A DNA stretch of 64,000 nucleotides from Piromyces finnis finn. Its lineage: Eukaryota > Fungi > Neocallimastigomycota. A model generated the notes under the pieces. It did not search any database. It was not told the origin of the DNA and saw only the letters and a program-made list of their open reading frames with translations. This document shows positions 895-15,144 of this stretch, piece by piece; position 1 is the stretch's first letter, and every line of letters begins with the position of its first letter. A program made the translations under genes and the position numbers. The stretch is taken from assembly GCA_002104945.1 (NCBI GenBank), contig MCFH01000010.1, forward strand, positions 744,001 to 808,000. The letters are read 5' to 3'.

Positions 895-6323
<5,429 letters not shown>

Positions 6324-8712: not shown

Positions 8713-9525
8713 GATTTATTTTATTTTATTATATTAATTTATTTTATTATGCTTTATTTATACTAAATGAATGTTTGTTTTATCAATTATTAAATATATT
8801 CATAAAAAAAAAAAAATGAAAATTTAAAAAAAAAATTTTTTAATAAAAGCATAAATTTTAACAATTTATGTATTATTGAAAAACTATATTAATATTTTTT
8901 TTTCGAGTCAATATATCAATTCAAAATTTTCATTTTGATTCGCTTATTTTCATTCTATAAAGTTAAATTTTTTATAAATTTTTTCTTAAATTATTAAATA
9001 TCTATACATATTTTTTTTTTTTTTGTTAAATAAAAAAAATAAAATATAATAATCAAACATAATTATAAATATTAATTGGTAACAAATTTATATATATTAT
9101 TTATATACTACTAATAATTTAATCTTAAAATACAATGAATTTCAACATAATATATAAAAAATTAGAGAGTATCAATTGATAAAAATCTTCAATATAAAAT
9201 GATTAGTAATAAAGTCAATATAACTAATATGAAACTATATTTCCCTTCAAATAATAGTTAGGAATTTAATATATCATATTTATTTTACTTAAATTAAATA
9301 ATTAGTATTAATAGTATATTAATGATTTCAAAAAAAAAAAAAAAAAAAAAAAGAAGATAGAAGCATTTATAAATATAATTTATACACCCCAGAAAAAATA
9401 TAATTACTTTATCTTTAAAGAATTAGAAAATGGTTTATTTTTAAGAATTAATATTTGGTATTAGGCAATAATATTATATTGACAATAATTTATATAATAC
9501 TTTATTATACTTTAAAGAATATAAA

Positions 9526-9921
9526 ATGGCCAAGGCTCTCGGTTTCCGTACTGCTGTTGATGCAGTTTTATTATCAACAGCTTTAGCTGGTATGCGTCGT
9601 GTTGGTAGATATGGTAAATATAGAATAAAAGTTGTAATTATAAATTAAAAAAAAATAATAAAATAAAATTATATATTAATAAAATATAATATATATTTAT
9701 TCTATCATTAAACATAATATATATATATTGCAAATAATTTAAAAGAATATGCTACCGACAGAATAAATAATGGACCAATTAGAACTGTTTTAGAAACATA
9801 TTTAGGTGTTGGTGAATGGATTTTAGAACGTGGTACTCGTACTATGGCTAGATATCCAATGACTTTTAGACGTATACCTGAGGACCAAGTCACTCGTAGA
9901 GGTTATCGTGGACGCACATAA
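9526..9921 (+). CDS. ATG44: Atg44/mitofissin-like (former DUF1748) microprotein, 87 aa, 2 exons (9526-9613, 9746-9921)
   Basis: Spliced ORF with consistent phase: MAKALGFRTAVDAVLLSTALAGMRRVGRYEYATDRINNGPIRTVLETYLGVGEWILERGTRTMARYPMTFRRIPEDQVTRRGYRGRT*. The D-x-V-L-x-S-T-x-L-A-G-x-[KR]-R and Y-L-x-x-G-E blocks and their spacing match the family as recalled from yeast Atg44. Confidence 0.82.
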
Positions 9922-11763
9922 ATAATTTTTTTAGAAAAAATTAATAAATAAATAAAATAAATTCTTCGATTCTTATTTGTATTATAATAATAATAGGCTA
10001 TTGGGAAAAAAAAAAAAAAAAGATAAAAACAAAACACAAAAAAATGCATATCATAATAAAAGTATATTTAATACATATGAATAATAAATAATAATAAATA
10101 ATATTTAACTTTATATAAAAAAAATTCAATTTTTCAATAAAAATATAATTTTTTATATAACAAAATAAAAATTAAGACAACAAATAACTAATAATAAAAA
10201 TAATATTAAAATCATAAGGATAAAAATATAGAAAGTAAAACTATAAAAATAATGTTATTATTCGTATTAATAAATAATATAATTTAAAAGAATAATAATA
10301 ATAATAATAATAATAATTAGTAATAAAAAAATTGAACTTTATTTATTATTAAGTATTATTACGAGAAAAAATAAAATGAAATTTTATTATAACAAATTAA
10401 TCAAGAAAAAAATTTAGTTGCAAGTAGTTTTCAAATGATTATTAAAATATATATATTTTCCTTTAAATAGTCTCAAAAATAATTATTAATATTATAGGTA
10501 GAAATTCTTTCCTTTTCATTTAATTTATATATTTTGTAAAGATTAATATTTCTTTTTTATTAAGCCAATAAAATAGTTTCTTTTGCGTTAATTATAAAAT
10601 AATTAATTTAAATTAAATAGAAAACTAATTATTAAAGTTTTATAATTTCCAAACAATTATTGTTGTAAATATACGTAAGCTATTAAAAAAATATTTATTC
10701 TGTATATGTAATATTTTGTTTAAATAAAAATATTTTTATGATTTATAAAAGTTTTCATTTTATATGTTTTATTAGTTTTTTTTTATTTATTTAATTTCAT
10801 TTTATATATATAAATTATTTTTGCTTCTTAATCTTTTTTTATTTTATTTTATTTTTTAATTTCTAAACTATAAACTAATTATTGTAATATTTTCTATTAT
10901 TTTAAATTATTAAAATAATATTGATTGATATTATAGTTTAATGTCAATGTATTTTATTATAAAAATAAGATAAAAAGTAATTGAAGAAAATGCGTGAAGA
11001 GAAAAAAAAAAAAAAATACAAATACATTATTATTTATGTATTTTAATTTCCCTTTTAATTTTTTTATTAATTTTTCTCTTAATTATAAAAGATTTATTTT
11101 ATTTTTTATTCTGTGTTTTCTTTTTTTTTTTTATTTTATTTTATTTTTCATTTATTTATTTATTTTGTTTGTTTTTATTGTTATATTTATTATTGTCTTT
11201 TTTTAAATCCTTTTTTTAAATATTTTGTTTTGGTTTTATTGAATAATAAAATTTTTATTATATTTTTGTACTTATATGTGCAATTTTGCCATGATAAAAG
11301 TATGTAATTAATGACATTAAGTACATTAATAATTAATATTTTTTACTTTATAAAAATTTTACTAAGATTTAATGATTTTTACTACTACTATACCAAGATT
11401 TTTATCTTTATTCCAATCATACTAATAATAGAGTGATAGATATATTATGTTGTTTGGATAAATATGATGATTTTTATTATTTTTATAATATTTTGAAAAA
11501 AAATTGGTATATTTTAACTCTTTTAGTTAATATATAAAAAGATAGATAATCAACATATTTGATATATATTATCTTAATTTTAGTCTTTTTTAAAGTTCAT
11601 TTTATACTTTTATTTTTTTATTTTGCTAGTTCTTTTTGTTTTTGAATAGTTATTTTACTTTTCTATTATGTTTAAAAAATGTGCTTGTTAAATTATTGCT
11701 GCTAAACATATAATAAGTAATGATATATAATTTTCTATTATCTTATGTTTGAATGAATGATGA

Positions 11764-12019: not shown

Positions 12020-15000
12020 TTAAAAGGTTTGTGAATTTTGAGCATATTCAAACTCTGATTCACTCTTTGTAGTTGATGTTACATCTAAATCATCAACCTT
12101 TTTAAAAGTACTTGTAAAGGATGATGCATGTTGTTGTTCTCTTATTGAATCTTTTCTTTTACGACTTGTAGCAACTTGATTTTTCAATTTCTTTTGTGCT
12201 ATACTATCAGCAAATCTAACTTGTAATGGATATTTAGCTCCCTTTAAGGTAACATTATTAAATAAATCAATTACATGTTGAGCGATTTCTCTTGAACCAA
12301 AACGTGCAAAACCAACACCACGGCTAGTACCGTCTGGATTTTTTAAAATTCTATGAGAAAGTACCTTGAAGTCACTAAATAACTCAAGTAGTTTTTCATT
12401 ATCATAATCTAATGGTAAATTAGAAATATATATATTCATTGAAGTTAAATCTTCCAAATTTTTCAATTTGCTACTGTATGATTCTTGAGATGCATGAGTT
12501 AATGATTTAGCAAAAGAGACATGATAACCTAAATTATTTAATTCGTTTAATGCTATATGAGCTTGATCTTCAGTTTCATACATTACAAAACCAAAACCTT
12601 TGCATTCATTAGTTCTCATATCAACAATTGCTTTAGAAGAAATAATTTTACCCCATCTAATAATATAAATGTATCCAAAAGTAAAAAATGTTAGTTTGTT
12701 TAATTATTTAATATTTTTTCAATTATTACTATATTTAGTTAAAATCTTACTACTATATATACCTAATACATAAATTGTATAAACTTTCATCAGTAGTATT
12801 TATTGGTAAACCACGAATGTAAATATTTGTACCAGGATATGGGAATTTAATGTTATTATTACCTGTAATAATTGGTAATACTGAAGGTGAAGTATTTCTA
12901 ACTGAAGCAATGACAGAAGAATTAACAGAAGAAGCTAGTCCAGAAGGTAATACACTTTCACTTAAAACCAATTCATCATTAAAACTATCAACCTCTTCAG
13001 AATCAACAAGAGTTGATGATGTAGCTAATGGACTTGTAATACTACTACTTGAATTTATATTAGAAGTAAGTGAATTTATTGAATGATTAATTAAACTTCC
13101 TTTTCTTCCCATAATTTGCATTTTCTTAAAATTTGAAATAGTTTCGTCTACAGACTTTGAACTTCTAATTTCTTCTTCAATAACATTTGGTTTATCTTCT
13201 ATATGAACTTTAGGTGTAATTGGCTTTATTATTGTTGTTTCACTAAGTTTAAATAACAATAAAATTTGATTGAATAAAAGACTAGCACTAGCCCACCAAT
13301 TTGATATTTCAGTATAACGATTGCCACGCCATTCAGATACAATGCAATTCTTTAAATCATAACATGTATGAATATGAAGTTTAAAATAGTATAAAGTAAT
13401 ATCAATATCTCCTGTATAATAAATATCGATATCAACCATCCATACACTTGGGTTTAACTTGAAAATATCTTGAAGTCTGTCTTTAATTTTTCTGATACTA
13501 TAATAAGCGTGTTGATACCATCCTTGAATAAGTAAATCCTTTTTAATATGATTTAACATATCCAACGGAATATTTGGATTACTTAATTTATCTATATTAT
13601 TAAATTAAAAAATATATAAATAAATATTTTTATTTATTTTTTATTATAAAAATTATTTTGATTATTTCAAAAAAATCAAAAATCATTATATAAAAAAAAG
13701 TATTTTTTAATCATTAGCTATTTATCATACCTTTATATTTAATTAAATCTTCAAATTTAAATTGAGAAGAACGAATCAATAATTCAATATCATTATTTAA
13801 ATGAGATAAATCACTCTCCCTCTCTGAACTTATTAATAATGAAGTATTACTAGAAACTGGTAAAGAATTGTGTCTCAAAATTTCTGAAGCACTATTATTA
13901 TTTATTGGTGATCCATGAAATATACCATTTTGCTCAGAATCATTATTAAAGAAAATATTATTATACATGTTTGATGTCGGACTTGTTTTTGAATTGTCTA
14001 AGGATAACTTTGAAAATTGTTTAATTAGCGGAGTTTGAGCATTAATTCCATTTGGTGATGTAATACTTCCATTTAAAGTATTATTGGGGGTAACATTATT
14101 AGAAGCATTTGCAGAAACATGACTACTGATTAATGTAATATCTGAATCAGAATGCATTAAACTATTTGATTCATTTTTAGAACCATCATTTATTAATGGA
14201 CTAAATGATTTAGAGGTAGGATTAAATAAGGATGGTACATTAAGATTAGAATTTGATGGTATAATAGATGAAGTATTAGGGTTACTACCTAAACCAATAG
14301 CATTAAAATCTTGAGTAGATGTTGTGTTTGTAGATTTTAATGATGAAGAAGCTGAAATGTTATTTACTGGATCGGAGCCAGATGTAGAAATTGTGGAAGC
14401 TATTGGTGATGTTGAAACAGAATTTAATTTGCTTTTTTCTTTCTCTTCTTCAACAATATTTGAATTTGAATTTGATATAAGACTTTTCACTTTAAATGAA
14501 GATCCATTATTCTCACTTTTCAATCCATGAGATGAGTTATTTGAAGTAGTAGGATTTGCTTTTTTGTTTATAAGGCTAAAAGATGTGCCTTTATTACTTC
14601 CATTTAAATAATTATTCCATTGTAAATGTGACCAGTTATTATTTGAAGTAATTGGCATATTTGCATTTGAAAATGTTCTATTATTAAACAAATTATATTC
14701 TTCGGCAGGTTCTGGTTTAATAAAATTTTTGTCTATAGTATTCATACTATTAACACTATTTCCTAATCCTACTGGATTGCTTATATTATTTACATTTAAA
14801 CCATTATTCATACCTATTCCATTTACAATAGCTGATAATTCACGAAGTGCTTGAGGATGTGGACGATGATTAGAATGAGAAATAGTATGATTTCTGAATA
14901 AAATATCTTCTGTAGCTGAAGTTTTGGATTGTAAATTTAAAGTTTGTGCAACGTTTTGATCCATTATTGAAACACTACCAGTTTTTGCTGCTGAATTTAA

Positions 15001-15144
15001 AGTTTTAATATTTTTTTCATCATTGTTCTGACTTATATTAATTGAATTGTTTTTGTTAATAAAATCTGCAGCTAATTGAGTTTGCTTTAAATCATCAATA
15101 TTTGTAGCTGTTGAATTTTGCGCATTTGTATCTTCAAAGTTCAT
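12020..15144 (-). CDS. RBMS/MSSP-like two-RRM RNA-binding protein with a long N/S-rich N-terminus; 3 exons (15144-13731, 13591-12763, 12656-12020), about 959 aa
   Basis: Exon phases are consistent. RRM1 TNIYIRGLPINTTDESLYNLCIR/WGKIISSKAIVDMRTNECKGFGFV and RRM2 NIYISNLPLDY...SRGVGFARF...LQVRFADS resemble the RBMS/MSSP RRM pair. Confidence 0.85.

Follow-up and report, generated by a model that had tools for sequence, protein, structure and literature searches.

The genome of Piromyces finnis, an anaerobic gut fungus of the Neocallimastigomycota, encodes a mitofissin. The two-exon, 87-residue gene was confirmed as real and intact at positions 9526–9921 of the plus strand of the window (i.e., the whole 64,000-nucleotide stretch of DNA analyzed), and there is ample sequence evidence that its product is a member of the mitofissin (Atg44/Mdi1) family. 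By analogy with the yeast proteins, the P. finnis mitofissin probably does the job of Atg44/Mdi1 from inside the hydrogenosome, as a membrane-fission helper for division of this organelle.

The coding frame opens with the ATG at 9526, runs to a GTAAAT at 9614, resumes behind the AG at 9744–9745, and continues in frame through the TAA at 9919–9921. By direct reading, the closest in-frame stop upstream of the start codon is at 9469–9471, with no ATG in between. Exon 1 (9526–9613, plus strand) holds the start codon, codons 1–29, and the first base of codon 30, and contains the first of the two conserved mitofissin blocks, D-A-V-L-L-S-T-A-L-A-G-M-R-R. Exon 2 (9746–9921, plus strand) holds bases 2–3 of codon 30, codons 31–87, and the stop codon, and contains the second block, Y-L-G-V-G-E-W. 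They are separated by a single phase 1 intron of 132 nt (9614–9745, plus strand) with donor GTAAAT and acceptor ...TTTAAAAG; part of the intron, at 9658–9701, is A+T-rich simple sequence. Pfam was searched separately with exon 1 (9526–9612) and exon 2 (9748–9918), which matched positions 5–23 (22.1 bits) and 30–69 (26.1 bits) of the Mitofissin profile PF08520 (formerly DUF1748), respectively. The six residues linking the two matches correspond to the six absent profile positions in exact register (with a split codon G/AA), which fixes the splice sites. The Mitofissin domain (residues 8–72) spans 9547–9873 of the plus strand, interrupted by the intron, and is followed by an Arg-rich C-terminal tail (residues 73–87, IPEDQVTRRGYRGRT; 9874–9918, plus strand) that lies past the end of the Pfam domain.

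The same protein is already in the databases as ORX54810.1 (UniProt A0A1Y1VH72), an 87-residue "hypothetical protein BCR36DRAFT_282426 [Piromyces finnis]", and every full-length analysis reported here was run on this database protein. It is 100% identical to the translations of both exons (29/29 residues for exon 1, 57/57 for exon 2), and its residue 30 is Glu, as the split codon predicts. The initial annotation had described a hidden two-exon gene of 87 residues that is absent from the open reading frame track. The exon structure, the length, and the absence from the track are all correct, but only a naive ORF scan would miss the gene, which is part of the GenBank annotation, where it lacks a name. 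The ORF track overlooks it because the mechanical list has just a 40-residue and a 25-residue piece at 9526–9921. The taxon, guessed from the DNA as Neocallimastigomycota, is borne out by the identity to ORX54810.1, and the claim of an intact gene with clean splice signals holds, given the open frame, the conserved intron site, and the spliced form found in relatives (see below). Exon 2, used in a word search, hit two clusters only, both of 87-residue proteins with PF08520 precomputed, and no word-sharing protein outside the Neocallimastigomycota.

The full-length protein matched PF08520 with 54.8 bits (E = 7.9e-15), residues 8–72 aligning to profile positions 6–69 of 69, against a curated gathering cut-off of 27 bits; the profile search that the initial annotation had proposed as a check thus came out clearly positive. 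No other Pfam domain was found. The protein has zero cysteines, and with its 87 residues it fits the single-domain microprotein architecture of about 70–90 residues. The two signature blocks that had been pointed out from the DNA were both recovered, one per exon, in the form D-x-V-L-x-S-T-x-L-A-G-M/I-R-R and Y-L-x-x-G-E-W, and they also align to the S. pombe protein of known structure. In an alignment of 19 sequences from two phyla (Neocallimastigomycota and 13 DUF1748 proteins of Xylariales), the residues D12, A13, V14, L15, S17, T18, L20, A21, G22, M23, R24, R25, Y48, L49, G52, E53, and W54 are invariant.

Among solved structures, the sole significant relative was 7YDO (S. pombe C26A3.14c, "Crystal structure of Atg44"): the single sequence matched it at E = 4.9e-8, and the 19-sequence profile at E = 1.2e-21 (79.5 bits). 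An AlphaFold2 model built from the same alignment was of low confidence (mean pLDDT 48.2) and placed helices at residues 10–26, 39–48, and 56–63. A Foldseek search with this low-confidence model (pLDDT 48) ranked 7ydo_A first, at a non-significant E of 0.32 and a TM-score of 0.35–0.40.

We compared the P. finnis protein with the characterized mitofissins and their relatives. S. pombe Atg44 (SPAC26A3.14c; 7YDO) belongs to the same Pfam family, is likewise small, cysteine-free, and single-domain, shares both conserved blocks, and aligns without gaps over residues 7–61. It differs in that it ends at the domain end, whereas P. finnis adds 15 Arg-rich residues, in its N-terminus, which is longer than that of P. 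finnis, and in its organelle, a respiring mitochondrion and not a hydrogenosome. The functional reference is S. cerevisiae Atg44 (also Mdi1 or Mco8; YIL156W-B, 73 residues), a protein of the same DUF1748/Mitofissin family that resides in the intermembrane space, has an amphipathic helix, completes Dnm1-driven fission, and takes part in mitophagy-linked fission (PMC10403340, PMC10473966). Compared by description, it has nothing equivalent to the C-terminal tail, and in budding yeast it is joined by another mitofissin, on the outer membrane. The DUF1748 proteins of Xylariales (e.g., Hypoxylon and Daldinia; 85–90 residues) are 39–44% identical to the P. finnis protein across the full alignment, share its motifs, and are of similar length; however, their extra length is N-terminal (about 13 residues) and they end right after the domain.

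The gene is conserved within the phylum. Orthologs of 87 residues were found in Neocallimastix californiae, N. lanati, Pecoramyces, and metagenome-derived contigs, with 89–94% identity that includes the tail. In the P. finnis genome assembly (56,455,805 bases, 232 contigs), the two exons were the only matches to PF08520, hence the gene is single-copy. Neocallimastix has two mitofissin paralogs at separate loci (L008/L009 and L012/L013) to the one of P. finnis; one is located downstream of a gene for the exosome subunit RRP4, which is encoded on the opposite strand, and the other downstream of an ISWI gene. One member of the pair, from N. lanati (KAG4091791.1), is annotated with 65 residues and a start at Met23, as if its first exon had been missed. 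At four Neocallimastix genomic loci an intron of 250–257 nt follows coding base 88, with a GTAAAT donor and an AAG/AATATG acceptor, and at these loci this placement is the sole GT..AG solution that gives back the protein.

In five contigs of relatives, one from the Logan assembly of SRR9694924 and four from JGI samples, the 264-nt coding sequence is uninterrupted and joined exactly at the predicted junction. As the intron is present in every genome assembly examined, these contigs are best read as cDNA-derived, i.e., as the spliced form in at least four relatives. Comparison of the window with the intronless contigs gave an overall dN/dS of 0.08–0.18 (about 0.1; Nei-Gojobori, per exon, split codon excluded), and by these codon comparisons the gene is under purifying selection. 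In addition, 0.48–0.53 of the sampled words of 9440–10010 were found in four small runs of 20–45 million letters each (one organism, three studies). The expected share is about 1.0 for full genomic coverage, about 0.70 for spliced mRNA with complete flanks, and about 0.38 for coding exons alone, so the observed share fits spliced mRNA and not full genomic coverage, an indirect sign of expression for P. finnis itself. We regard it as highly improbable that this is a relic gene, silent or in decay, or that its product works on a membrane unrelated to the hydrogenosome: a dN/dS of about 0.1 across genera, the intact frame, and the conserved splice sites all count against a relic, as do the spliced cDNA-like contigs in relatives and the recovery of about half of the words of this stretch in the small runs.

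Hydrogenosomes of anaerobic fungi have two bounding membranes and must be divided and inherited. The P. finnis genome (18% G+C) was searched in six frames, exon by exon. Fis1 is encoded (80.7 bits), as is a dynamin-related protein, with its GED exon scoring 105 bits. The best solved relative of the GED exon was human DNM1L/Drp1 (65 bits), followed by 6FGZ (52 bits), which we take to be Chaetomium thermophilum Vps1, and by classical dynamins (43 bits). Atg8 genes were also found, along with two loci of the PRELI/Ups type, of which the stronger scored 132 bits; in mitochondria, PRELI/Ups proteins are intermembrane-space lipid carriers. The same search of the genome returned no match for the Atg11 C-terminal, Atg17-like, and mitofusin domains, nor for Tam41 and a Gep4-type PGP phosphatase; because it ran exon by exon through a genome of 18% G+C, these blanks do not show absence.

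The presence of both Fis1 and a Drp1-like dynamin makes it economical to assume that the P. finnis mitofissin has kept the same job inside the hydrogenosome. Yeast Atg44/Mdi1 is soluble, resides in the intermembrane space, and has amphipathic helices; it attaches to curved membranes, can sever lipid nanotubes unaided, is required by Dnm1 to finish division, and is also required for the fission that lets the phagophore take a piece of the mitochondrion (PMC10403340, PMC10473966, PMC11423663, PMC12936173). By analogy, the P. finnis protein would sit between the two hydrogenosome membranes, where it would bind and destabilize highly curved membrane, and constriction from outside would then finish the cut through both membranes. 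The external force could come from the Drp1/Dnm1-like dynamin encoded in the genome, recruited by Fis1, or from a closing phagophore. It is reasonable to see here a retained fission or turnover pathway for hydrogenosomes, as the initial annotation had suggested, with indirect backing from Fis1, the Drp1-like dynamin, and Atg8. Given that mitofissin has a general part in Dnm1-dependent division besides mitophagy (PMC10403340, PMC10473966), division is the safer of the two readings, and routine organelle division is likelier than autophagic turnover, a possible role for which the backing is the presence of Atg8.

That the protein is dedicated to autophagic, mitophagy-type turnover of hydrogenosomes and not to their routine division is decidedly unlikely. 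Such a role would agree with the Atg8 genes and with the history of Atg44, which was first found as a mitophagy factor (PMC12936173, PMC10473966), but two yeasts need Mdi1/Atg44 for ordinary, Dnm1-dependent division as well (PMC10403340, PMC11423663). The six-frame, exon-by-exon genome search, whose blanks do not show absence, gave no match to the Atg11 C-terminal and Atg17-like domains, and an inherited organelle must divide whether autophagy acts or not. Atg32 and Atg43, the mitophagy receptors known so far, are to our knowledge specific to yeast lineages, which also counts against dedication to turnover.

A membrane-fission helper for division thus remains the preferred reading. Fis1, the Drp1-like dynamin, and mitofissin together suggest that the fungal division toolkit outlived respiration, cristae, and the organelle genome, all of which were lost, in which case mitofissin would serve double-membrane scission as such and not a task tied to respiration. 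The mitofissin family is widespread in fungi (PMC10403340), with members also reported from algae and some plants (PMC10473966). Its retention here is mostly to be expected of a descendant of aerobic fungi and is not surprising. Little is known about the division and turnover of hydrogenosomes and other reduced mitochondria; our literature search found no publication linking Atg44 to hydrogenosomes, and the mitofissin literature consulted in this search did not mention anaerobic fungi. A hydrogenosome-enriched proteome is available for Caecomyces churrovis (PXD073882; PMC13556243).

The C-terminal tail sets the anaerobic fungal proteins apart. The initial annotation had drawn attention to a basic C-terminal extension, and such an extension of 15 residues past the domain is indeed present and nearly invariant in six Neocallimastigomycota sequences. 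It was not detected in the 13 Xylariales homologs aligned, and S. pombe Atg44 stops at the equivalent of residue 72. The tail has a dN/dS of 0.14–0.21, a value based on 15 codons with few sites. Residues 58–87 include nine Arg or Lys, all of them Arg, and the whole protein has a net charge of +8 and a pI of 11.0, versus +3 to +4 and 9.7 for the Xylariales homologs. Judged by these alignments, the tail is conserved across the phylum, under constraint, and lineage-specific, and it could alter the topology of the protein relative to yeast Atg44.

A precedent for such an extension is S. cerevisiae Mfi2/Mco12, which, compared by description, extends C-terminally past an Atg44-like domain (PMC12936173). 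Its authors suggest that the extension blocks import and holds Mfi2 on the outer membrane (PMC12936173). The P. finnis protein might accordingly act at the outer membrane of the hydrogenosome, from the cytosolic side, with the tail blocking import, as the sole mitofissin cooperating with or replacing dynamin. Although the conserved tail, missing in S. pombe Atg44 and the Xylariales homologs, and the single mitofissin locus of P. finnis are in line with this topology, we consider it unlikely: the tail has 15 residues versus about 33, of variable sequence, in Mfi2, the match to the Atg44-based Pfam model is strong, and both Atg44 motif blocks are present. Moreover, Mfi2 orthologs reportedly show less conservation among fungi than those of Atg44, and this family is reported as narrowly distributed and as missing in S. 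pombe and most filamentous fungi (PMC12936173).

Both yeast mitofissins, Mfi2/Mco12 included, depend on cardiolipin to bind membranes and drive their fission in vitro (PMC12936173). The tail and the high charge of the P. finnis protein may be an adaptation to the hydrogenosome, either to different anionic lipids (e.g., little or no cardiolipin) or through a changed topology, though we hold this idea to be rather unlikely. If the topology option were true, one protein would cover the work that is shared out in budding yeast between Atg44 inside and Mfi2 outside. In either case, the tail offers a concrete handle on what sets the topology and lipid preference of mitofissins, a question that the Mfi2 paper leaves open.

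The cardiolipin side was followed up in the genome. For N. lanati and Anaeromyces, a flattened supplementary table appears to list Psd1 and no transferase-type cardiolipin synthase, as far as that table can be read (PMC10648710). The P. finnis genome has four loci of the CDP-alcohol phosphatidyltransferase family. One of them, at G000:C178:161780-161986 on the minus strand (L018; G000:C178:160280-163486), matched pgsA TIGR00560 with 41.7 bits over 59 residues of one exon. Its two adjacent exons, at locus positions 1755–1937 and 1528–1704, both matched the CDP-alcohol-type ClsA model NF053678 and were collinear, and the closest solved relative is a PGP synthase. In opisthokonts, PGP synthase belongs to the phospholipase-D type and Crd1 is the PgsA-like enzyme, so this PgsA-like locus is a candidate for a PgsA/Crd1-type cardiolipin synthase. 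A scenario of a fungus without cardiolipin for which the tail compensates was set aside, as this candidate exists despite the Tam41 and Gep4 blanks and the published table, and we make no claim that the fungus lacks cardiolipin.

The genomic neighborhood is very A+T-rich, with a G+C content of 0.11–0.32 in 2-kb windows. An ISWI-type chromatin remodeller is encoded upstream at 2306–5995 on the plus strand (SNF2-related domain at 2306–2683, SLIDE at 5843–5995), and an RRM protein downstream on the minus strand (12020–12619; 12020–15144 with its long Ser/Asn-rich low-complexity exons). At the Neocallimastix loci the neighbors are identical in kind, i.e., an ISWI-type remodeller and an RRM protein. 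The mitofissin gene stands alone within about 6 kb of DNA with 13–18% G+C.

Two of the intronless contigs carry other company. On L003 (1–1293), an uninterrupted arginyl-tRNA-protein transferase gene is located 200 nt upstream of the ortholog, and on L015 (398–3106), an uninterrupted ABC ATPase and a kinase fragment are located near it. Synteny with the arginyltransferase gene of L003 was rejected, given that no such gene was found in the 64-kb window. The gene company on these two contigs may stem from transcript assemblies that are chimeric or contain read-through, or the gene order may really differ. Finally, the P. finnis gene is flanked by plus-strand poly(A) runs at 9331–9353 (about 23 bases), about 170 nt upstream of the start, and at 10007–10021 (about 15 bases), about 85 nt downstream of the stop; these probably reflect the base composition of the genome.
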